The notes: a model not told the origin generated them from the sequence alone. Counted from the first letter of the stretch, positions 31,203 through 48,851 are shown. The stretch is DNA of 64,000 bases from Setoptus koraiensis (GCA_048013815.1 CM106585.1:7812001-7876000); one strand, 5' to 3'. Numbers and translations are program-made.

Positions 31203-34200
31203 ATGGACCAACTTTATCACAGTTGCCTGGCCAAATGCCTGGCCTCAACTGGCTCCAATCAGGACCAACAAGGACGGAGTAAGTTGGACATTAGCACGGC
31301 CCAAGTTGACACCATCGATAGGCTTGGGCAGCAGCTTGTCGAAGCCGGCCTGTCACTGAATGATGACTTCTCTCCTGATTCATTATATTTGCGTTTAAGC
31401 GAAAGATTGAATTCTTCCCATGGTGTAAAATTATCCTCAAATCAGCTTCCATTAATACTGACCTGCCTAGAGGGTTTAGGGAGATTGTCTCAATTGGAAA
31501 ATAAATTAGCAGATGTATGTGTTAGCTCTTTGCGGGATTTCCTTTTGATGCCATCGCCCATAATGAGCAAATTGCATAGAATTTCCACCGAACAATATCA
31601 AGAGATACAAAATGCACCATCGGTCACCGCATCAAGCCACGATTCTGGAAATGTCTCCCTAACTCTATCTAGTATTGAGCCAAACGGAGATACCAATGTC
31701 GCTACTGCAAAAAATTCGGCAAAAGTTCGCAAATTGGCTGCCACATCATTTGAAAGTCTACGTATAGAGGCCACAAAAAATCTGGCTATCTGTCTAAGAG
31801 TGAGATCCAAAATGGATCAACATTGTATACAGGCTTTCATAGCTTCAGTGTCGAACAGACTCTATCAGGCAGAAAAGAGTCAATTTGAGTCAAGTCTCAT
31901 ATCAATCAATACAATTCTCACTCTTGGTAGCGTGGCCACAACACTCAGTGACGTTCCTAAGACAATGGAATCAATACTTCAATTCTTCCATCAGAGATTC
32001 TGTCGCCCTCCATCGTCTATTGACTCATTGATTGTTGAACAATTAGGCCGCATGATGTTGGTTCCCTCCAAGGATCATGCAATATTTGATGAGATAATGA
32101 AAATGTTTGCTACAATTACAATCCAATCTAGTTCAGCCTATGGTATGGGCACAAAATCCGACGAACCTCATCAAGGATATCGTCACGTCTCTCTAGCAGT
32201 GATCAATGCTCTATCATTGGTAGCTGCAAATCTCAACGACGAGACTGTGCAGCAAGAATTCCTTGTAAAATTGTTGGAACTATTCGTTCAACTTGGTTTG
32301 GAAGGAAAAAAGGCTAGCGAGAAGACCTCAGTTCCAATAAGAGCATCAAGTAGCGCTGGAAGTTTGGGCATATTGATACCTGTGATAGCCAAATTAGTCA
32401 GGCGTATTCCAAATATTACAGATCCAAAGCCACGTTTGCACAAACTATTCAGAGACTTTTGGCTCTATTGTGTAGTGATGGGATTCACTTGTGAAACCAG
32501 TCTATGGCCAAAAGAATGGCTCGAAGGTGTGAAAGAAATAGCCTCCAAATCACCATTGTTAAATTCAAGAGAGCATCTTAGATCAGAATTACAGTACAAC
32601 ACCGCGATAAGGAATGATGCAGCATCCACTGATGAGCTTCAAGAAGTTCGTAATCAAATACTCAATGACTTAGACAATCATCCCGATGTAACTGCAATGA
32701 TAAGTAAACTTAGCTTTTCACAATGCACTTATCTGATGTCTGTATATAGAATGGAATCATTTAGGATAGAAAATCAATCAAAGTCAGACTTTTCTTTTCA
32801 AGCAATGTTGCAATACCTAGAGGATCCCACAATACAAAAGGATAAAGACGGTATTAGGCAATGTATTTTTTGTATTGCTGACAAAATATTTAGAGTCTAT
32901 CTAGATGTTATATCGAGAAAGGCACGAAACAAGAAGAGAGATATTGAACTTGAAGAACTGGCCATTTTATTGCTAGTGAAATTTAATCATCCACAAAAAC
33001 AAATCCGTCGACTTGCCGACAAATATCTTAGTGGTCTTGTAGACAAATTTCCGCACATGCTGTGGAGTGGAAGAGTTATAGTCACCATGTTAGACATTTT
33101 GAAAGTACTTGGCAAATCGATGCAACTTGGTGCTAACGAGTCTAGTCCCGAACTGCCTATTCCAAATACAAACTACACTATTCAATTGACTGACACAGCC
33201 GAGGCCAGAGAAAGCATAGTAAGAGATTTTGCTGCCCATTGTCAAAGGATCATACAAGAGGCTGTTAAATGGGCTCCAAAAACAACAAAGACTCATCTGA
33301 TAGAATATATCACAGATTCAGAGCGTATACAACTCAATCAAGGTCAGCATCCAGGACTGGCTCTGGCCATAGAGAGTATTAATCATCATCCTAACACCAA
33401 CAATTTGTCTCCGACCTCTACACTCACCGATAAATGGCCCAATTGCATGAAGAGTGACTGCTCGGAATTCGTTACATCTGTCAGTGTCAGGAGTAGATAC
33501 AAGGGACTTGTATGTGGCATGATTGCTCTGTTGAAGAAACAAGACTCCGATGGAGATCAAGATGTTTATAGTCAATTAGGTACTTTATTTATTAACCAAT
33601 TAGCGGAAAGTTGTAAAAATCTCGATATTGAAATCCATAGAGACGCAATCTGTAAAGTTACAGCTTTGCTCATAGCATCCTCGGGATGTAACCAGAAACT
33701 ATTGCACGCACTTTGTTGGGCACCGTTGGACTACTTCACCTCCAGATCCATGCAAATCATAGTGTCTTGTTGGGATTGGTTATTGGCAGCAAGAAACGAT
33801 TTAGAGCTCGAGTTTGTTCAAGAGATGGTTTCTGCTTGGAATGGGACAATCGATAGAAAGCTAGGAATGTTCGCTAAGGAACCTGTCATGGGGGATCCTC
33901 TCGCCACTTCGGATGGCCAACGATTGAAACCAGACCAGCCCCCAATTGGAGCGCATCATATATGGCTAAAGTTTGCAAGCGAGCGAATTGAGACAGCAAA
34001 ATACAGTAATATAGATCTTATCGATATTTTTGTTGATATGCTCCACAGATCTTTGCCTATGGAGGTAGGAAATCTGAAAGCCGCGTCTCGTCACATGGTA
34101 ACTATAGGATCTCGATTTAGACTACTGCAGTGCAGTTTATCCTTAATTCAAGGTGACGCTCTCCCAAAGTCTGTGAGTAAGACAGTGCTACGCGAACGCA

Positions 34201-36437
34201 TCTACTGTAACGCTATTGATTATTTTTGTGGTCCGCAAGTGTGCCCTCCGCAAAAGGCGAACGATTTGCGAGAGGACATTGTCACGTTGATCAAATTCTG
34301 GCAAGGGCTACACTCTGACAAGAAATATCTTAAGGCATCCCTGATGCAGAGCGATAGCATGAGCGATCTAGGACGTGGTCCTACTCCAGTTGATCTGACA
34401 ACCACATCTCAAGATATACGCCTTAGCACCGATCTGACTAGAATAGGATGGATAAATACAATGACGATTGGTAGTAATAGTTTTTCGGCTTCATCTAAGC
34501 GATCATACTTCAAAAATCAAATTCAATGGCAGAAGAAAGAGAATGTCAATGCAGAAATCTATGTCAAGGACTATGCTAAAAGACGAAACCTAATACTCGG
34601 ACTACTCGCTGTCGAGATAGAATATTTGTTAGCTTGGATGAATCCTATGTCTTTGGGAGAGTTGCATATATTAGGAGAGGATACCATCAGCGCCTGGCGC
34701 AATCAAACACTCACTGAACGTTCGGCTAGAGAAATGGTTAGACTTGCATGGGAAATATCGCCCACACTGGCCGTCTATCTGCCTCACCGTTTTAAAAATT
34801 CCGAGGTGGTGATGAATGAGGTGTCTAGATTAGTGAAGCTATCACCCACCGCTGTCTGCCACATACCAGAGGCTCTACAATTCTTAGCTAATCCAGTGGA
34901 TATCGGAAGGGATGTGCCAGAACTGAGTCACATAGTAACTTGGGTACCCGTGCAACCTATTCTAGCATTGTCATTCTTTTCTCGTACATACCCGGCGCAT
35001 CCTCTCACAGCACAATATGCCATCAAAAGTCTTTGTTCTTATCCACCTGAAGTTGTAATGGCTTACATACCTCAACTGGTGCAAGCTGTTCGTCATGATA
35101 AAATGGGTTACGTAAGCAACTTCATCAAGACTGCAGCGCAAAGGTCTCAACTGCTCATGCATCAATTAATTTGGAATATGAGAACTAACATGTATCGAGA
35201 TGAAGAGGGAAAGGATCCCGATCCCGACTTACATGAGCCTCTCAATGATCTCATAGACAGTATGATTGGTGGTCTCTCTGGACCGGCAAAACATTTCTTT
35301 GAGAAGGAGTTCGACTTTGTTCATCGCATAACATCAATTTCTGGTGAAATTAGAGAATTTCCCAAAGGAGAACAAAGAAAAGAGGCGCTTTTGCGCGCAA
35401 TCAGGAAATTCCACATAGAACAAGGCTGCTATTTACCTTCGAGTGCACATGCCATAGTGACAGATATCGACAGAGACTGTGGTGTACCGCTTCAGAGTGC
35501 AGCCAAGGCACCATTCCTATCAAAATTCAAGGTATTGGAATGCGGAATCAACCGAGTGGAAGACCTCTGCATGAATTTCAACAACAACGGTGGCGAACTC
35601 ACTGTTGACAAGATCATGGCTAACTTCCGCGATGAGTCCTCTATGCAACGTGAGCTTTGGCAGGCTGCGATATTTAAAGTAGGAGATGACGTACGTCAGG
35701 ATATGTTGGTATTGCAGCTCATATCACTCTTTCGGAATATATTCGAAAAAGCTGGACTTGATTTGTTTTTACATCCTTATCGAGTGGTGGCCATCTCTCC
35801 GGGTTGTGGTGTTATTGAGTGCGTGCCAAATGCGAAATCCCGTGATCAATTAGGAAGGGAGACAGACGTTTCACTGTACGATTATTTCAAGAATATGTAT
35901 GGAGATACTAGCTCAAACAAATTTCAAGAGGCCAGAGCAAATTTTGTTAAAAGTATGGCCGCCTACAGTATTGTAGGATTTTTATTTCAAATCAAAGATC
36001 GTCATAATGGAAACATAATGATCGATGATTGTGGAAGAATTATACACATCGATTTCGGTTTTGTATTCGAAAGCTCGCCAGGTGGAAATTTGGGATTTGA
36101 ACCAGATATCAAACTAACTGATGAGATGGCCATGATCATGGGCGGGAACATGGAGGCTCCACCTTTCAAATGGTTCCTTCAATTGTGCGTTCAAGCATTC
36201 CTAGCCGTTAGACCATATCGTGAGGCAATTATATCTATAGTGCAATTAATGTTGGATACAAATTTACCGTGTTTCAGGGGGCAAACAATCAAGTTACTGA
36301 GAGCACGTTTTGCGCCAAATTGTAACGATAAGGAGGCCACCAACTATATTCTGAAGATTATACGTGATTCATTTTTGAATTTCCGCACGCGTACATACGA
36401 TATTATCCAATATTATCAAAACCAAATTCCGTATTAG
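31203..36437 (+). CDS. PI4KA: Phosphatidylinositol 4-kinase III alpha, single-exon ORF (1744 aa)
   Basis: LRDFLLMPSPIMSKL, PKPRLHKLFRDFWLYCVVMGF, a PIK helical domain (YIPQLVQAVRHD, HQLIWNMRTN), and catalytic PLQSAAKAPF, IFKVGDDVRQD, KDRHNGNIM, HIDFGF, FESSPGGNLGFE. Ends YDIIQYYQNQIPY. Confidence 0.98.
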   Translation: MDQLYHSCLAKCLASTGSNQDQQGRSKLDISTAQVDTIDRLGQQLVEAGLSLNDDFSPDSLYLRLSERLNSSHGVKLSSNQLPLILTCLEGLGRLSQLENKLADVCVSSLRDFLLMPSPIMSKLHRISTEQYQEIQNAPSVTASSHDSGNVSLTLSSIEPNGDTNVATAKNSAKVRKLAATSFESLRIEATKNLAICLRVRSKMDQHCIQAFIASVSNRLYQAEKSQFESSLISINTILTLGSVATTLSDVPKTMESILQFFHQRFCRPPSSIDSLIVEQLGRMMLVPSKDHAIFDEIMKMFATITIQSSSAYGMGTKSDEPHQGYRHVSLAVINALSLVAANLNDETVQQEFLVKLLELFVQLGLEGKKASEKTSVPIRASSSAGSLGILIPVIAKLVRRIPNITDPKPRLHKLFRDFWLYCVVMGFTCETSLWPKEWLEGVKEIASKSPLLNSREHLRSELQYNTAIRNDAASTDELQEVRNQILNDLDNHPDVTAMISKLSFSQCTYLMSVYRMESFRIENQSKSDFSFQAMLQYLEDPTIQKDKDGIRQCIFCIADKIFRVYLDVISRKARNKKRDIELEELAILLLVKFNHPQKQIRRLADKYLSGLVDKFPHMLWSGRVIVTMLDILKVLGKSMQLGANESSPELPIPNTNYTIQLTDTAEARESIVRDFAAHCQRIIQEAVKWAPKTTKTHLIEYITDSERIQLNQGQHPGLALAIESINHHPNTNNLSPTSTLTDKWPNCMKSDCSEFVTSVSVRSRYKGLVCGMIALLKKQDSDGDQDVYSQLGTLFINQLAESCKNLDIEIHRDAICKVTALLIASSGCNQKLLHALCWAPLDYFTSRSMQIIVSCWDWLLAARNDLELEFVQEMVSAWNGTIDRKLGMFAKEPVMGDPLATSDGQRLKPDQPPIGAHHIWLKFASERIETAKYSNIDLIDIFVDMLHRSLPMEVGNLKAASRHMVTIGSRFRLLQCSLSLIQGDALPKSVSKTVLRERIYCNAIDYFCGPQVCPPQKANDLREDIVTLIKFWQGLHSDKKYLKASLMQSDSMSDLGRGPTPVDLTTTSQDIRLSTDLTRIGWINTMTIGSNSFSASSKRSYFKNQIQWQKKENVNAEIYVKDYAKRRNLILGLLAVEIEYLLAWMNPMSLGELHILGEDTISAWRNQTLTERSAREMVRLAWEISPTLAVYLPHRFKNSEVVMNEVSRLVKLSPTAVCHIPEALQFLANPVDIGRDVPELSHIVTWVPVQPILALSFFSRTYPAHPLTAQYAIKSLCSYPPEVVMAYIPQLVQAVRHDKMGYVSNFIKTAAQRSQLLMHQLIWNMRTNMYRDEEGKDPDPDLHEPLNDLIDSMIGGLSGPAKHFFEKEFDFVHRITSISGEIREFPKGEQRKEALLRAIRKFHIEQGCYLPSSAHAIVTDIDRDCGVPLQSAAKAPFLSKFKVLECGINRVEDLCMNFNNNGGELTVDKIMANFRDESSMQRELWQAAIFKVGDDVRQDMLVLQLISLFRNIFEKAGLDLFLHPYRVVAISPGCGVIECVPNAKSRDQLGRETDVSLYDYFKNMYGDTSSNKFQEARANFVKSMAAYSIVGFLFQIKDRHNGNIMIDDCGRIIHIDFGFVFESSPGGNLGFEPDIKLTDEMAMIMGGNMEAPPFKWFLQLCVQAFLAVRPYREAIISIVQLMLDTNLPCFRGQTIKLLRARFAPNCNDKEATNYILKIIRDSFLNFRTRTYDIIQYYQNQIPY

Positions 36438-41655: not shown

Positions 41656-43698
41656 ATGCCGTCCATGGATCCAAGTTTTGACGACGCCTGGAAGTCAGAG
41701 GAAGAGATTCAATTGGCCGAAATATTAGCATTCTACGACGAATGGTTAGCCGCGGAGCTAGATTCTTTCGAACAAAAGACAACAGAACTAGAATGGAAAG
41801 AGATAATTGATGGATATTTCGTCGACTATGTTGTGAAGATAAAACTGCAATCGGATAAATCATTATTTGCTCAAACCATTGACAGCTTTACCGAGTTGGA
41901 GCTGTCTGAAAGCGACGATCGAGGCACCCAAATATGGTCGGCCAGAGGTCGGATTCATTATGACAACTACGTTGACTCCCAATCAAACAACTGCCTGCAA
42001 ATCAGAATCTCAAATAAACAAGGGCAAAACAAGACTTGGAATCACATCGAGCGTAAGCCAACTGTTGGCCTTTTCAAAATTGCGAATGCGAAATATTTTA
42101 AAAGCAAAATCGATATCATCACTGACGGACTCAAACGGATTGCCAACGACTATCTACTTCGGTCGGCCATTCTCGCTAAAGAAAGGGAATATACTAATTT
42201 TGAAAATAGTAACATCCTAGAATGTGTGTCACTAAATACTAAGTTGACGCTGGAGGATAGTGATGACGCCCGGCTGAATGAGAGCCAAATAGAGGCCATC
42301 AATAATGCTCTATGCAGCCGAATTAGTTTGATAATGGGACCACCAGGTACAGGGAAAACATTCACTTCGGCAGAATTGGCATTACAACTTTTCAGAACAA
42401 GACTCTCTATTGATTCCAAGATACTTATTTGCGCTTCTAGTAATGTAGCCGTCGATATTATAGCCGACAACATATATGAATTGGGCAAACTGAGAATGGT
42501 GAGATTGAGTTCAGAGTTCAATATAAGAAAACAGGATGGAAACTGTAAGCCGTACTACCTAAATCGCCGAGTTGATTACGAGGTCATGGTCTATTATCGC
42601 AACCAATGCTCATCAGAGGACCTAGAATATGAGAGGCGAAAAATGAGGAGATACAGGAAAAAGTTCGAGAAAAAGATACTGAGTGAAGCTCAAGTGATCT
42701 GCTGCACATGCAATAGTATCCCTAAGCTGATGACATACGGCTCTTATTTGTTTGATTCCATAATTGTTGACGAGTGTAGCCAGATAAGTGTCCCGGATGG
42801 TATGTTACTCTTACAGTTTCTGCCAAGGCGCTTAGTGCTGGTTGGGGACGACAACCAATTGGGACCGGTTATAAAGGAAACGCTGAAAAAGAAATATAAT
42901 TGCGCAAATACTGTCCTATATAACAAACTTAAAGGTGTCGGTTTCAAGCCTGTGATGCTAAACGTTCAATACCGTATGCACCCGGAGATAGTGAAATTTC
43001 CTAACAGTCACTTCTATGGCGGAAAAATACAAAACGGCATTCAGGCAAGCGACCGTCGATGGACGGGTAACCAAGGCGGAAGTCCGTTTCCCATTTCTGG
43101 CACACCAATTTATTTCCATTGTCACAATTTTGAGGAGAGTTGTAGAGCTGATTCCACATCCTGGATCAACGAAGGAGAGATAAATATTGCTATCAGCACA
43201 GTTGCAGTGCTATTATCTAGGGGAATAGAACGAAATAAAATTGGTGTGATTACGCCATACAAAGATCAAAGCGAGTGCTTAAGAGAAAAACTGTCTTGCG
43301 GTGGAAATTTTATGCTCAGACAATCGCCGGAGCATTCTATTGAAGTGGACACTGTCGATGCCTACCAGGGTCGTGACAAAGATTATATAATTGTGTCATT
43401 GGTCAGATCAAAGGATTGCACTGGCTTCATAGCCGATGGCAAGCGACTGAACGTGACGCTAACTCGAGCAAAATATGGCTTAATCATAATCGGAAATGCA
43501 CTAGCTTTATCCAGGAATCCTTTATTGGATGTATTGATTCAGAACTTCTCCAAAAGAGACCTCTTGTATTCAGGTATTCTATCAGAGAAATCTCAACCTG
43601 TTACATTGAACAAACTCTTTATCAGAAAACAGCGCATGATTATGTGGAAGAGCTCTCAAATGAGAGTTCTCAGAACTAGATTACTGTGCGTAAAGTGA
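41656..43698 (+). CDS. UPF1-derived SF1B helicase lacking the CH domain and SQ tail (~680 aa)
   Basis: LNESQ, GPPGTGKT, SNVAVD, VICCTC, DECSQ, LVGDDNQLGP, QYRMHP, IGVITPY, VDAYQGRDKD and RLNVTLTRAKYG are colinear with UPF1. The 1B-like region precedes the RecA core. First ATG at 41656. Confidence 0.9.
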   Translation: MPSMDPSFDDAWKSEEEIQLAEILAFYDEWLAAELDSFEQKTTELEWKEIIDGYFVDYVVKIKLQSDKSLFAQTIDSFTELELSESDDRGTQIWSARGRIHYDNYVDSQSNNCLQIRISNKQGQNKTWNHIERKPTVGLFKIANAKYFKSKIDIITDGLKRIANDYLLRSAILAKEREYTNFENSNILECVSLNTKLTLEDSDDARLNESQIEAINNALCSRISLIMGPPGTGKTFTSAELALQLFRTRLSIDSKILICASSNVAVDIIADNIYELGKLRMVRLSSEFNIRKQDGNCKPYYLNRRVDYEVMVYYRNQCSSEDLEYERRKMRRYRKKFEKKILSEAQVICCTCNSIPKLMTYGSYLFDSIIVDECSQISVPDGMLLLQFLPRRLVLVGDDNQLGPVIKETLKKKYNCANTVLYNKLKGVGFKPVMLNVQYRMHPEIVKFPNSHFYGGKIQNGIQASDRRWTGNQGGSPFPISGTPIYFHCHNFEESCRADSTSWINEGEINIAISTVAVLLSRGIERNKIGVITPYKDQSECLREKLSCGGNFMLRQSPEHSIEVDTVDAYQGRDKDYIIVSLVRSKDCTGFIADGKRLNVTLTRAKYGLIIIGNALALSRNPLLDVLIQNFSKRDLLYSGILSEKSQPVTLNKLFIRKQRMIMWKSSQMRVLRTRLLCVK

Positions 43699-43949: not shown

Positions 43950-44280
43950 TCGGACGAGCTGTTGACACTTGTGGATGGAGGTTTATGGAAGAATACAAAT
44001 CATTGTCCCAATTGTGAGAAGATCTTCCGCTGTCCCGCATCATCTTAGCAAATGCATAAGCTTTATCTAGGAATACATCATTAGATGTATTGATCCAGAA
44101 GTTCTCCAGAAGAGACCTTATGTGTTCAGGTATCCTAACAGAGGAATCTCTACCTGTTACAGTGAACAAATTTCTGATTAGGAAATTGCGCATGAACATA
44201 GGTAGAGTTCCCAGTGTTAGCTTCGAGTAAGCCCAGTCTAGAGAGATCCTATAAATAAAGTGAGATGGATCAACATCTGG
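43950..44280 (+). pseudogene. Degenerate 3' fragment of a UPF1-like helicase paralog (relic 1)
   Basis: 44049-44200 aligns with 43495-43650 and reads ANA*ALSRNTSLDVLIQKFSRRDLMCSGILTEES with a stop. 44240-44278 matches the stop region of the second helicase (48340-48378). Confidence 0.85.
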
Positions 44281-44299
44281 CGCTTTCTAAGTTATCTGG

Positions 44300-44780
44300 C
44301 GGGCAGTTTTATTGACGACGTTGCGTTGCTCATTCCTTTGCAGGTCATTCAAATCAGTTGCCGACTAGCACCCCATAATCCCTCACGCCTTACTTGTTGC
44401 GGCGACGAAAACGATCTCATCAAAAACCGATTGAGTCGCATAGAAACTGATAGAGAGACAATCGTACTCAATGAACTGGGCAAACTTATGTATCAAGTTC
44501 ATTGTGTCGCATCGGAGATGCCGTAGATGTGGACACTGGTGACGCTTCCCGGAATTGTGAAAAAAAAACAATATCGTCCTGTCGTGCCCTTGATCCAACT
44601 GATTTTATCACAAATCGAAGCAACCTAAATGTTTTGCTAATTCGAGCCAAGTGCGCTCTCATTGTCCTTGGCGACGCGGTGGCCTTATTCAAAAATCTAT
44701 TACTATAAACATGCATGTTGGTCAACGATTGCTCTACGAGAGGCTCGTTGCTAGGAGACTTCACAGATAAACTATTTCCA
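44300..44780 (+). pseudogene. Degenerate 3' fragment of a UPF1-like helicase paralog (relic 2)
   Basis: Frameshifted peptides DLIKNRL, VDVDTGDA, FITNRSNLNVLLIRAKCALIVLGDAVAL and VNDCSTRGSLLGDF correspond to NLIKNRL, IEVDTVDA, RLNVTLTRAKYGLVIIGNALAL and IKDCSSRGLLYSDF. Confidence 0.8.
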
Positions 44781-45624
44781 GCTTACGGCACGAACACCCA
44801 TTGGAATCATATCTCGACGGTAAATTCTAGTTAATCCGATTCACATTTTAACTTGTTGCTACCGTTTCATATTTGTTTTTATTTCATTACAATCAAAATC
44901 TGCCGTGTTATCGTTGTGGTCTGATTCGTTTGCAATTGACGAATTGCAACATGACGCCACACGTTTGCATTGAAAAGTCGATGATATTTCTGTTCAAAGT
45001 TCCAACTTGAGACACAATTATTTTCACACAATCCAAAATCATCTTGTTGTCGCCGTTGCTCTCCTTTCTGTCACTATTACAATGTTAGACTGCCGATTGA
45101 AGTTCACGTGTTTACAAGCAGCATTAGTTTTTCGACGCTCTGAAATGAAGCCCTTGTGAGACGCCAGCCCGAATCGTCGGGCTATTGCGCCAAGTTTTTG
45201 GTTGTTTTCGTTTGGTCGTAAGCCGACATGTTGAACTAACACTGGCTTGTCGCGATGCAAGCGTCGCATTCGTGATCGGTTGGATTACTCTCGAATATAT
45301 GATGAAGACTAACAAATAAAGAGGCATTTGTGTCGGGGGAAGGCAAAAAGCACTCTAATAATCTGTAGTTCAACATTGAGCGCATATCAATTTACATTGT
45401 ACCCCCCGCAGAGACAAAAGCTTGTAAGAGCGAAACAATCCTTTTTTCCTCTACTCACAAGTCAGCATTATGAGTCATGTTCACATAATATCCTTGTATT
45501 TGTAGTCTATAGTCACACGGTTGATTACATAAGAACAATCTAAACAAAGTCGTCTATTAATCCCTGTTAATTAAGCAAATTTTCAGTTTTTTTAAACTCA
45601 GTCTTGTTACACTCAACTATTAAC

Positions 45625-48366
45625 ATGGCATCTGAGAGGCGGGCTTGCTGGATTGACCTGTTGCCCGCAGAAATTCTATATATAATACTTGGCCATCTGA
45701 GCGATTACACAGATCGTTACCATTTATCCCTGTTGTCGGACAGATTAGCAAGTGTGGTACTGGAATCATACAAATCCCTTCGGACAATTGAAAGTCTATC
45801 ACTTGATGATTACAAGGCAAACACGGTCGACTTTGAGGCGCTTGAGCCCATTCTAAAGACAGCCTCTAACCTCAAAACACTGAAACTGACCAACCGATAT
45901 GGACAAAATGTGGTCAGAAGATTGGGACCGGACTCACATTATATTGTTACGGACAATTGTCCCCAATTGACAAGCTTGGATGTATCCGGTGTCTCGATTG
46001 CCCCATCCGAGCTAGTTTCGATGATGAAAAAATGCGATACAATTTCTTCGTTGAACATAGTTGATGCAAGGTTCGATGATCTGAACGAGATGCCAATCAT
46101 AGAACATCGGGCGTTCATTCAAATTGAGCGAAATGATAGATGTACTTACGAACCCGACTATTCCCCAAACTATGTTGTCTCTCGAATGTTACCAGCCCCT
46201 AGGAGGCCCCTTCAATCTCCACCCAGGAGGCTGATTCCCGGTCGAATCCGACGAGTTCCGGCCGATGGTAGAGACCTTCAATCGATATCTTTCCCAGCCC
46301 CTTATGGTGAATCAACCACGAAAGAGGAGATTCTTTTGAAAAGAGAATTGGCATTTTATGATGATTGGCTGTCAGAGGACCTCACTGATTTCTATCAGCA
46401 ATTTGAAGAAATACTATGGACAAAAATCCACGAACAGGGCCACTATAGCTACATTGCAACAATAAAAAAAGGCAAGATCAATCGATCTTTCCTACACGAA
46501 ATTGATAAATTTACCAATTTGGAATTGTCAGAACATGACATGATGGGTGACACTATATGGTCAGCGCGAGGGTGGCTTCATCAAGACAGTCACATCCAGT
46601 TAAACAAATGTCTGCGTGTCAAAGTTAGAAATGTTGGTGGTCAAAACAGGACCTGGTATCACGTTGAGGCCATGCCTACCAAGGGTCTATTTAGGATAAC
46701 TAATGCCAATCTTCGGAATATACACCTAGAGAGGAAAGAAATGCTAACAAATGGTCTCAAGCAAATATCTTGTGACTATTTGCTTCGTTCAGTCGTTCTT
46801 GCAGGAAAGAATGAATTTTCGATATTTGCTCGAAGAAACAAACTGAGATCTGTATCACAAGACCATATCACGTTGGGCGATGATTGTAATCTCAATGAGA
46901 GTCAGGTAAACGCTATCAAGACCTCGTTGTGCAACAGGATCAGTCTGATAATGGGGCCGCCCGGCACAGGCAAGACATTTACCTCTGCAATGTTGGCCTC
47001 AAAACTGTTCGAAACACGTTCTTGTATAAACTCTAAGATACTGATATGTGGATCGAGCAACATCGCAGTAGACATTATAGCAGACAAAATCCGAGAACTG
47101 GGCCTACTCAGAGTGGTGAGAATCAGTTCTGAGTACAACATGAAAAAACATGATGGTAATTCTGAGCCTTACTATTTGAATAAGCTTCTAGAAGACAGGA
47201 TCAAGGTGAAGACAGGTGAAGAAAGTTTCTTACCAGAACCGTTCAGAGGATTACGTGAAATGCTTTCTCAAGAGAAATACTTAAACCGCCATGAGAGATA
47301 TGAAATGTATGATCGGAGGAGGAGATGCGAGCAACTTATACTGGACGAATCTCAGGTGATTTGCTGCACATGTAATGGCGTTCCCAAATTACTAAGCTAT
47401 ATAAACGGCAAATATATATTCGATTCGATAATTGTTGACGAGTGCAGCCAAATCAGCGTTCCGGAAGGTTTGTTGCTCCTGCAATTCCTGCCCAGACGCA
47501 TAGTGCTAGTTGGGGACGACAATCAATTGGGACCAGTGATAAAGGACACGCTGAAGAAGAAATATAATTGCGAAAACACTGTCCTATATAACAAACTTAA
47601 AGGTGTCGGTTTCAAGCCGATCATGTTGGATGTTCAGTACCGCATGCATCCAGAAATAGTGAAATTTCCCAACAAGCATTTTTATCAAGGCAAGATAGCG
47701 AACGGCATCCAAGCCAGCGACAGACAATGGACTGGACACGAAAACAAATGTCCTTTTCCCAAACCGGACAGGCCTATATATTTCCAATGTCATAATTCAA
47801 TGGAGAGCTCTAGAGATCATTCTACATCATGGATCAATGACGGAGAAGTCGAAGTTGTTGTGGCTACCATTCAGATTTTGCTCTCGAGAGGTATACAGAA
47901 GAATGAGATCGGGGTCATCACACCCTACAAAGATCAAAGTAACCTCATCAAAAATCGACTGAAGCCCAGAGATGACAAGGGAAAGATAATTAAGACAGAG
48001 CCTTCGAATGACATCATCGAAGTAGACACTGTCGATGCTTACCAGGGTCGCGACAAAAATTACGTTATTGTTTCATTGGTCAGATCTAGGAACTGTACTG
48101 GTTTCATTTCAGATAGAAAACGACTCAATGTGACGCTGACCAGGGCAAAATACGGCCTTGTAATTATCGGAAACGCGCTCGCTTTGGCCAATAACCCATT
48201 GCTCAATCTCCTAATCAAGGATTGTTCTAGCAGAGGCCTATTGTACTCAGATTTTTTGTCAGAAAAATCTCGATCCCTCACATTCAAAGAACTTGTGATG
48301 CAAGACCACAGTATCTCAGAGGTTGTAAGTTCAGTGATGAGAGATCTCATAAATAAAGTGAGATAG
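45625..48366 (+). CDS. F-box/LRR - UPF1-like SF1B helicase fusion (~913 aa)
   Basis: N-terminal F-box (IDLLPAEILYIILGHL...DRYHLSLLSDRL), LRR-like segments (LKTLKL, NCPQLTSLDVSG, CDTISSLNI), a Pro/Arg linker, then a complete UPF1-type helicase with all motifs intact. All in one uninterrupted ORF. Confidence 0.88.
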   Translation: MASERRACWIDLLPAEILYIILGHLSDYTDRYHLSLLSDRLASVVLESYKSLRTIESLSLDDYKANTVDFEALEPILKTASNLKTLKLTNRYGQNVVRRLGPDSHYIVTDNCPQLTSLDVSGVSIAPSELVSMMKKCDTISSLNIVDARFDDLNEMPIIEHRAFIQIERNDRCTYEPDYSPNYVVSRMLPAPRRPLQSPPRRLIPGRIRRVPADGRDLQSISFPAPYGESTTKEEILLKRELAFYDDWLSEDLTDFYQQFEEILWTKIHEQGHYSYIATIKKGKINRSFLHEIDKFTNLELSEHDMMGDTIWSARGWLHQDSHIQLNKCLRVKVRNVGGQNRTWYHVEAMPTKGLFRITNANLRNIHLERKEMLTNGLKQISCDYLLRSVVLAGKNEFSIFARRNKLRSVSQDHITLGDDCNLNESQVNAIKTSLCNRISLIMGPPGTGKTFTSAMLASKLFETRSCINSKILICGSSNIAVDIIADKIRELGLLRVVRISSEYNMKKHDGNSEPYYLNKLLEDRIKVKTGEESFLPEPFRGLREMLSQEKYLNRHERYEMYDRRRRCEQLILDESQVICCTCNGVPKLLSYINGKYIFDSIIVDECSQISVPEGLLLLQFLPRRIVLVGDDNQLGPVIKDTLKKKYNCENTVLYNKLKGVGFKPIMLDVQYRMHPEIVKFPNKHFYQGKIANGIQASDRQWTGHENKCPFPKPDRPIYFQCHNSMESSRDHSTSWINDGEVEVVVATIQILLSRGIQKNEIGVITPYKDQSNLIKNRLKPRDDKGKIIKTEPSNDIIEVDTVDAYQGRDKNYVIVSLVRSRNCTGFISDRKRLNVTLTRAKYGLVIIGNALALANNPLLNLLIKDCSSRGLLYSDFLSEKSRSLTFKELVMQDHSISEVVSSVMRDLINKVR

Positions 48367-48851
48367 ATCAACATCTGCAAGTTGATTAGTAATCGTTCAT
48401 ATTTATTTGTCCTAAACTGGCTGGATCGCTCTCTTTTGCACAGTCCTGCACAGGAATTTTTATAGTGAGATCCATTCGTTTGCATTTTTCTAACCAAAAT
48501 ATAAATAGATTGTATATCTCGTTCCTTTCGGCACCCATGCACTATGGCTTTTTGTTGTTCGAACCACTCATGAAAGTTTCATGAACATATTCTGCTGAAG
48601 AGCATCGTTTATCCGGTTAGCGCAAACAGAAGAATTGTAAAGAATTGGGGCTGTCATGAACGAATCGTCGCGGACATTTTCAGCACTCGCTCTTACAAAG
48701 CTTCAAACGAAATCAAAAATAGATTTCTATCAGATGCTCAACTCGAGTTAGGTGATATTCTACGGTGACAAAATTCAGAATTTCAAAATAGGTATCCAGA
48801 AATAAAATGACAAATAGAAGAGACGAATTGTTCCATTTTCAAATACACAGG

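Follow-up and report, generated by a model that had tools for sequence, protein, structure and literature searches.

Does a single gene of the mite Setoptus koraiensis join an F-box and leucine-rich repeats (LRRs) to a UPF1-type helicase with its motifs intact, and could the product act as an adaptor of the SKP1–CUL1–F-box (SCF) ubiquitin ligase? The question is raised by gene B, a single-exon gene within a 64,000-nucleotide stretch of the genome (GCA_048013815.1, CM106585.1:7812001-7876000; the window refers to this whole stretch). Our results support a chimera in which the SCF ligase would be docked through predicted SKP1 binding by an F-box/LRR head while a UPF1-like motor would track along nucleic acid, and we place the probability of this reading at about 0.5. 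The SCF-adaptor function within it is one that we infer from the domain architecture.

The open reading frame of gene B runs uninterrupted from 45604 to 48366 on the plus strand and its first ATG, at 45625, opens 913 codons, in agreement with the one open frame described in the initial annotation. This ATG lies in an AACATGG context (A at -3, G at +4) and an AATAAA overlaps the last codons of the gene, at the stop. When the bases were shuffled 20,000 times, the first 231 codons, which make up the head, never stayed open. Two single-nucleotide polymorphisms distinguish the window from the sequencing runs X2 and X3 inside the gene, and both are synonymous. Neither B nor its tandem paralogue A is present as an exact sequence in the protein collection searched. 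In runs X2 and X3 a 4671-nt Logan contig corresponding to 44800-48800 tracks B as far as 47607 and then passes into paralogue-like sequence with many mismatches. Such joining of tandem copies by the assembler would account for the lack of an intact B call in the collection.

The helicase half of B is recognised by the Pfam families AAA_11 (4e-35) and AAA_12 (1e-54). Motifs I, Ia, II (DExxQ), III, IV, V and VI are all present between residues 444 and 841, with GPPGTGKT at 444, DECSQ at 605, GDDNQLGP at 630, QYRMHP at 671, TVDAYQGRDK at 802 and RLNVTLTRAK at 833. All of the motifs initially reported as intact (Walker A, Walker B, QYRMHP, QGRDK and RLNVTLTRAK) were found again. UPF1_1B was not detected in B by the Pfam sequence search. 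In an AlphaFold2 model built from a 15-sequence alignment (mean predicted local distance difference test score, pLDDT, of 68, with core blocks at 75-92), a helix (residues 233-255) leads into a beta-barrel (257-360) and further helices (361-404), followed by RecA1 with a helical insertion and then RecA2. Residues 232-891 of this model align with residues 296-913 of human UPF1, which span the helicase region in full, stalk and 1B included (Z 28-29), so the proposed colinearity from 1B to the end of RecA2 is sustained.

UPF1 tops the phmmer ranking of B against the Protein Data Bank (PDB; 2e-73, 250 bits), with yeast Nam7 at about 235 bits, followed by SEN1 (147), SETX (141), DNA2 (111), Aquarius (100), IGHMBP2 (98) and ZNFX1 (85). 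Structural comparison of the model with VIA-align ranks twelve UPF1/Nam7 entries first (Z 27-29), with IGHMBP2 at 25.6, SEN1 and SETX at about 23.5 and ZNFX1 at 23.3 in lower ranks. The first eleven Swiss-Prot matches in AFDB are all UPF1 orthologues, from fungi to man. By sequence and predicted fold alike, UPF1 is the nearest known helicase and the motor of B is UPF1-like, of superfamily 1B (SF1B). The identity of the B core to UPF1 is only 26-31%, which argues that B is a lineage-specific paralogue and not an orthologue of the nonsense-mediated decay factor.

B shares with UPF1/NAM7 the core layout of stalk, 1B barrel, RecA1 with 1C and RecA2, together with all motifs, and differs in what surrounds this core. 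In UPF1 a CH zinc-knuckle domain binds UPF2 and mediates autoinhibition, and an SQ/TQ-rich tail is phosphorylated by SMG1. Pfam finds no CH/UPF1_Zn_bind match in B at E values up to 1, and the approximately 23 residues beyond the RecA2 core hold no SQ motif, so B was rightly described as having neither a CH zinc domain nor an SQ-rich tail. An F-box/LRR head stands in their place.

This head keeps the LPxEIL..IL..L core that is canonical for F-boxes, and weak LRR matches accompany the F-box-like match in Pfam. An AlphaFold2 model of residues 1-235 folds residues 5-155 (pLDDT 70-84) into a helical F-box and, after it, four LRR units of beta-alpha type and leaves residues 155-235 disordered. The F-box helices reach pLDDT 73-80, and the predicted secondary structure gives a short run of about four LRR units at residues 57-169. 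The best Foldseek matches to the head model are FBXL2-SKP1, SKP2-SKP1, FBXL17, D3/MAX2, COI1 and TIR1, with modest E values of 6e-4 and weaker. VIA finds the F-box and LRRs of B colinear with those of TIR1, COI1 and SKP2 and gives Z of about 10 to the LRRs of SKP2 and FBXL17. The ANP32A LRR matches the LRR region of B at E 0.006, and language-model features of residues 1-235 point to F-box/LRR clusters (0.89), which serves as a lead only. The linker holds 11 Arg and 11 Pro in 66 residues (pLDDT 24-45 over residues 166-231), and homology of B to the heads of its relatives stops near residue 159. The LRR-like repeats and Pro/Arg linker described at the outset are borne out, as about four LRRs and a linker with pLDDT below 50. 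The linker was also considered as a frame-shifted LRR remnant; none was found in it and this origin was rejected.

Homologous heads strengthen the F-box assignment. An exhaustive phmmer search with residues 1-420 of B against 1.84 billion representatives returned 29 proteins. The N-termini of the mite proteins P0024, P0026, P0027 and P0028 (670-723 aa) match B residues 8-179 with E values from 8e-22 to 1e-17 and 34-41% identity, and the head of P0030 matches that of B at 9e-10. In P0024, P0027, P0028 and P0030 the F-box-like domain scores 26-38 bits, above the Pfam cutoff, at the position aligned in register with the F-box of B. A profile of the family head retrieves from the PDB sequences TIR1 (6e-9), COI1 (6e-8), FBXL17 (5e-6), FBXL3 and SKP2 (both 3e-5) and also FBXL5. 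On balance the F-box of B, which is sub-threshold alone, is accepted by transitive homology and predicted fold. The initial F-box call is upheld by the paralogue register, the family profile and the fold, but not by the sequence of B taken singly. B resembles the FBXL class (SKP2, FBXL2/3/17, TIR1 and COI1), by profile and fold, in that the F-box is directly followed by LRRs, and differs in having only about four of them and a helicase where FBXL proteins carry further LRRs as a substrate site.

The mite relatives P0023-P0028 and P0030 all come from one Logan assembly, SRR33593474. We considered whether this assembly represents the same genome as the window, given PI4K proteins that are 99% identical. 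This was rejected because the DNA of the PI4K locus is 87.5% identical, a divergence that indicates a sister species. In this species the F-box/LRR proteins are extended by a stalk/1B region and by a RecA1 without Walker A and end near the equivalent of B residue 670, with no RecA2 downstream. These half-helicases (P0024, P0026, P0027 and P0028) share with B a homologous head, stalk/1B and RecA1 and fall in the same clade. They differ in having lost Walker A and the whole of RecA2 and in carrying about twice the LRRs, whereas B keeps a full motor with intact motifs. P0023 (L003:892-3366) is a full-length helicase that lacks a head; it shares 44% identity with B, its Walker A is degenerate (GPPGTGVT) and its motif II has NE in place of DE. 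Its first approximately 25 residues are strongly hydrophobic, like a membrane anchor, and precede a charged low-complexity stretch; upstream on the contig lie the last 42 residues of another helicase copy, 71% identical to the C-terminus of B. P0030 (L006:1354-2250) is a stand-alone F-box/LRR protein of 298 aa that ends in an acidic tail; it has 30% identity to the head of B and is surrounded by housekeeping genes (ThrRS, Yju2 and a WD40 protein). It is a candidate for the gene type that donated the head. In a third sample, SRR18067581, a 2.2-kb contig (L007:279-2164) encodes a family head (39% identical to B residues 24-138) and a stalk/1B with a dead RecA1, the head and the dead RecA1 lying in different reading frames. 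This break may stem from an assembly error or an intron, or the copy may be frameshifted.

A helicase tree was built with heads removed and seven mite proteins included, and without bona fide UPF1, MOV10, SETX and IGHMBP2 references. The seven mite proteins form one clade (support 100/99), within which B, A and P0023 group together (96/99), as do the four half-helicases (100/99). On these sequence comparisons the family is mite-specific, its helicase modules forming one clade and its heads being homologous. The initial annotation had overlooked that B belongs to such a family, with a headless twin in the window itself. Among the UPF1-like helicases of this tree, which holds no bona fide UPF1 references, the mite clade sits on a polytomy. 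The initial proposal that a UPF1 paralogue had exchanged its CH domain for an F-box stands as far as UPF1 is nearest and a CH domain is absent, but the exchange itself is not shown by such a tree. A tree of the heads alone did not resolve their branching. The distances of B to the half-helicase group are similar for the head (34-41% identity, with no head above 41%) and for RecA1 (30-34%), which argues against a recent transfer of the head. The simplest history that the sequences suggest is one old fusion with later loss of the head in A and P0023. One old fusion would have produced a B-like ancestor, partial duplications of which would have given the headless helicases A and P0023, and decay would have left F-box/LRR proteins with a dead half-helicase. 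Among the members seen so far, B appears to be the only complete one with its motifs intact.

The surroundings of B point to the same kind of turnover. Paralogue A lies 4 kb upstream, has helicase domains only by Pfam and begins exactly at the border between linker and helicase in B. The two differ with a nonsynonymous divergence (dN) of 0.31 and saturated synonymous divergence (dS), which indicates purifying selection on both motors. In B this selection has acted on the helicase half ever since A and B arose by duplication. Two adjoining relics of helicase 3' parts occupy the interval that separates A from B and show that partial duplication has recurred in the array (Table 1). The first (44039-44296) is 81% identical to A and 77% to the 3' end of B. 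Besides the head of B, tblastn finds no further head copy in the window. A mobile-element origin was rejected given that there are no inverted repeats and that the direct repeats are only paralogue-derived. A 300-nt stretch in the motif III-IV region is 82% identical between A (42737-43036) and B (47405-47704), whereas the remaining DNA repeat pairs of A and B reach roughly 63-73%. Gene conversion from one tandem copy to the other may account for this stretch.

Table 1. Features of gene B and of the tandem array in the window (positions counted from the first nucleotide of the window; aa, residues of B)
Feature	Position	Strand	Basis or remark
Gene B, single-exon coding sequence, 913 aa + stop	45625..48366	+	F-box/LRR head fused to UPF1-like helicase
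F-box, aa 8-53 (helices 9-12, 15-24, 28-35, 39-53)	45646..45783	+	Pfam sub-threshold, paralogue register, AlphaFold2, Foldseek
Short LRR domain, aa 54-165, ~four beta-alpha repeats	45784..46119	+	AlphaFold2 secondary structure, ANP32A LRR match, VIA
Disordered Pro/Arg-rich linker, aa 166-231	46120..46317	+	Composition, low pLDDT
Stalk helices and 1B beta-barrel, aa 232-420	46318..46884	+	AlphaFold2, human UPF1 alignment; common to paralogue A and P0023
RecA1 with 1C insertion, aa 421-640	46885..47544	+	Pfam AAA_11, motifs, UPF1 alignment
Walker A	46954-46977	+	Inside RecA1 of B
DECSQ (Walker B)	47437-47451	+	Inside RecA1 of B
RecA2, aa 641-890, motifs IV, V, VI	47545..48294	+	Pfam AAA_12 1e-54, motifs
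Paralogue A, tandem headless UPF1-like helicase, 680 aa	41656..43698	+	BLASTP, 57% identical to B aa 232-908
Helicase relic 1, copy of C-terminal tail and stop/AATAAA region	44039-44296	+	tblastn, direct repeats D2, D4, D7
Helicase relic 2, RecA2 fragment	44299-44762	+	tblastn, 44% amino acid identity to B 796-877

Several observations weigh against the reading of B as a functional chimera. Taken alone, its F-box-like match in Pfam (residues 10-46) has an E value of 0.012 and 15.8 bits against a cutoff of 24.3, and phmmer with residues 1-60 finds no match among the PDB sequences. The VIA Z scores of the head (9-10) are little higher than those of generic LRR proteins. The number of LRRs is about half that of the paralogues, so the head could be decaying. 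The closest relative of B, paralogue A, has no head, and a headed B orthologue was not recovered from the sister species. Lastly, the three runs that hold the locus resemble genomic DNA, with flat depth over intergenic sequence and contigs of 25-55 kb, and a search restricted to RNA-Seq runs listed none.

Much of this would be expected if B were a plain UPF1-like helicase like A, whose F-box/LRR remains from the ancestral fusion in a decaying state and serves no SCF function. The LRRs would then have been cut to about four and the rest replaced by disordered linker, the sub-threshold F-box would reflect decay, and the headless full-length helicases A and P0023 would be its natural companions. 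However, all 231 head codons remain open, which the shuffles do not reproduce, the F-box core is retained, residues 5-155 still fold in the model with pLDDT 70-84, and the head is 34-41% identical to those of the paralogues; after so much divergence, sequence free of constraint could not be recognised any more. We consider a vestigial head unlikely. The character of the runs, and the position of B in a birth-and-death array with two relics adjoining, would also suit a fusion that is not made as one protein, either because B is an unexpressed young pseudogene or because transcription or translation starts downstream of the head. Against this stand a frame of 913 codons without a stop, the strong context of the first ATG, the AATAAA at the stop, differences between runs that are synonymous only, and the strong constraint on the helicase half, and we hold it to be very unlikely.

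If B is indeed a functional chimera, its F-box would dock SKP1 and thereby CUL1-RBX1, and its motor would bind RNA or single-stranded nucleic acid and translocate 5' to 3'. B would in this way bring SCF ubiquitylation to the proteins on the strand being tracked, which might be those of a viral, transposon or host ribonucleoprotein. The logic would be that of FBH1, in which an F-box is joined to a UvrD-type motor that acts on RAD51, with a UPF1-type motor instead. FBH1, with its N-terminal F-box on an SF1 motor, is a mechanistic precedent for a translocase serving as SCF receptor. It differs from B in being a UvrD-type SF1A helicase of 3'-5' polarity on DNA and in having no LRRs, while the motor of B is SF1B and UPF1-like. 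The UvrD-helicase Pfam family scores 22.8 bits on B (cutoff 23), over the P-loop only, and the best UvrD structure ranks 48th against the B model in VIA-align, as expected from the earlier remark that FBH1 is UvrD/SF1A and not UPF1-like. B and FBH1 are independent fusions, and FBH1 is an analogue only.

The F-box might alternatively act on the helicase itself, either in turnover by SCF auto-ubiquitylation or within a SKP1-only complex that is not an SCF, and not be aimed at substrates on ribonucleoproteins. Many F-box proteins are self-ubiquitylated and some reside in non-SCF SKP1 complexes, which is established knowledge only, and the short LRR domain of B offers little surface for a substrate. 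Nothing in the sequence, however, separates self-action from substrate targeting, and the sister group with its longer LRRs and dead helicase half looks more like a use of both parts in binding substrate or ligand. Self-directed action is in our view quite unlikely.

Beyond the mechanism proposed for the chimera, a broader scenario can be sketched, although we consider it rather unlikely. B could be the surviving complete founder-type of mite-specific SCF receptors in which an active UPF1-type RNA translocase serves as the 'substrate domain', with the ATP-driven motor carrying the ligase along RNAs where it would mark or clear proteins. Through the birth and loss of copies the family would be giving rise to motors without a head and to decoys whose motor is dead, perhaps as part of a conflict with transposons or RNA viruses.

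Full-text literature searches, including the terms AAA_11/AAA_12 and F-box helicase, retrieved no description of a fusion of an F-box with a UPF1-like helicase. No such fusion is mentioned in the genome papers of Aculops lycopersici and Floracarus perrepae, nor was one retrieved by a search of the eriophyoid genome literature. A word-based search with the whole protein is dominated by generic helicases, with an F-box Pfam domain in none of the 22 helicase matches, and the word-based homologue search with residues 1-420 gave no match. No larger cluster among the nearest matches in the ESM Atlas unites an F-box with AAA_11/12. The impression that the architecture belongs to no described family is consistent with these searches, in which no published description was found. 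B combines known modules in a way that is new and is so far confined to a narrow mite lineage.

PI4KA (31203-36437) is a single exon of 1744 codons, and several other large genes of the window are also single open reading frames. The closest named protein to this intronless PI4KA (1744 aa) is that of Aceria tosichella, at 75%. This match indicates that the window derives from an eriophyoid mite, an origin with which a cuticle R&R protein and further long genes of one exon in the window agree. Massive intron loss has been described in eriophyoid mites, and the single-exon genes of the window fit this description.

Both F-box proteins and UPF1-like helicases are familiar in their own right, and no description of the two joined was found in the literature searched. 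Should the fusion prove to be expressed and to bind SKP1, an RNA- or single-stranded DNA-tracking motor would be coupled directly to SCF ubiquitylation, in a parallel to FBH1 on the RNA side. The genomes of eriophyoid mites are reported, as cited in a preprint, to be extremely streamlined and to have very few gene-family expansions. Despite this streamlining the family seems to have expanded here into headless motors, dead half-motors and the complete copy B. As B alone combines the head with every motif of the motor, it provides a natural entry point for the biochemistry of the family.

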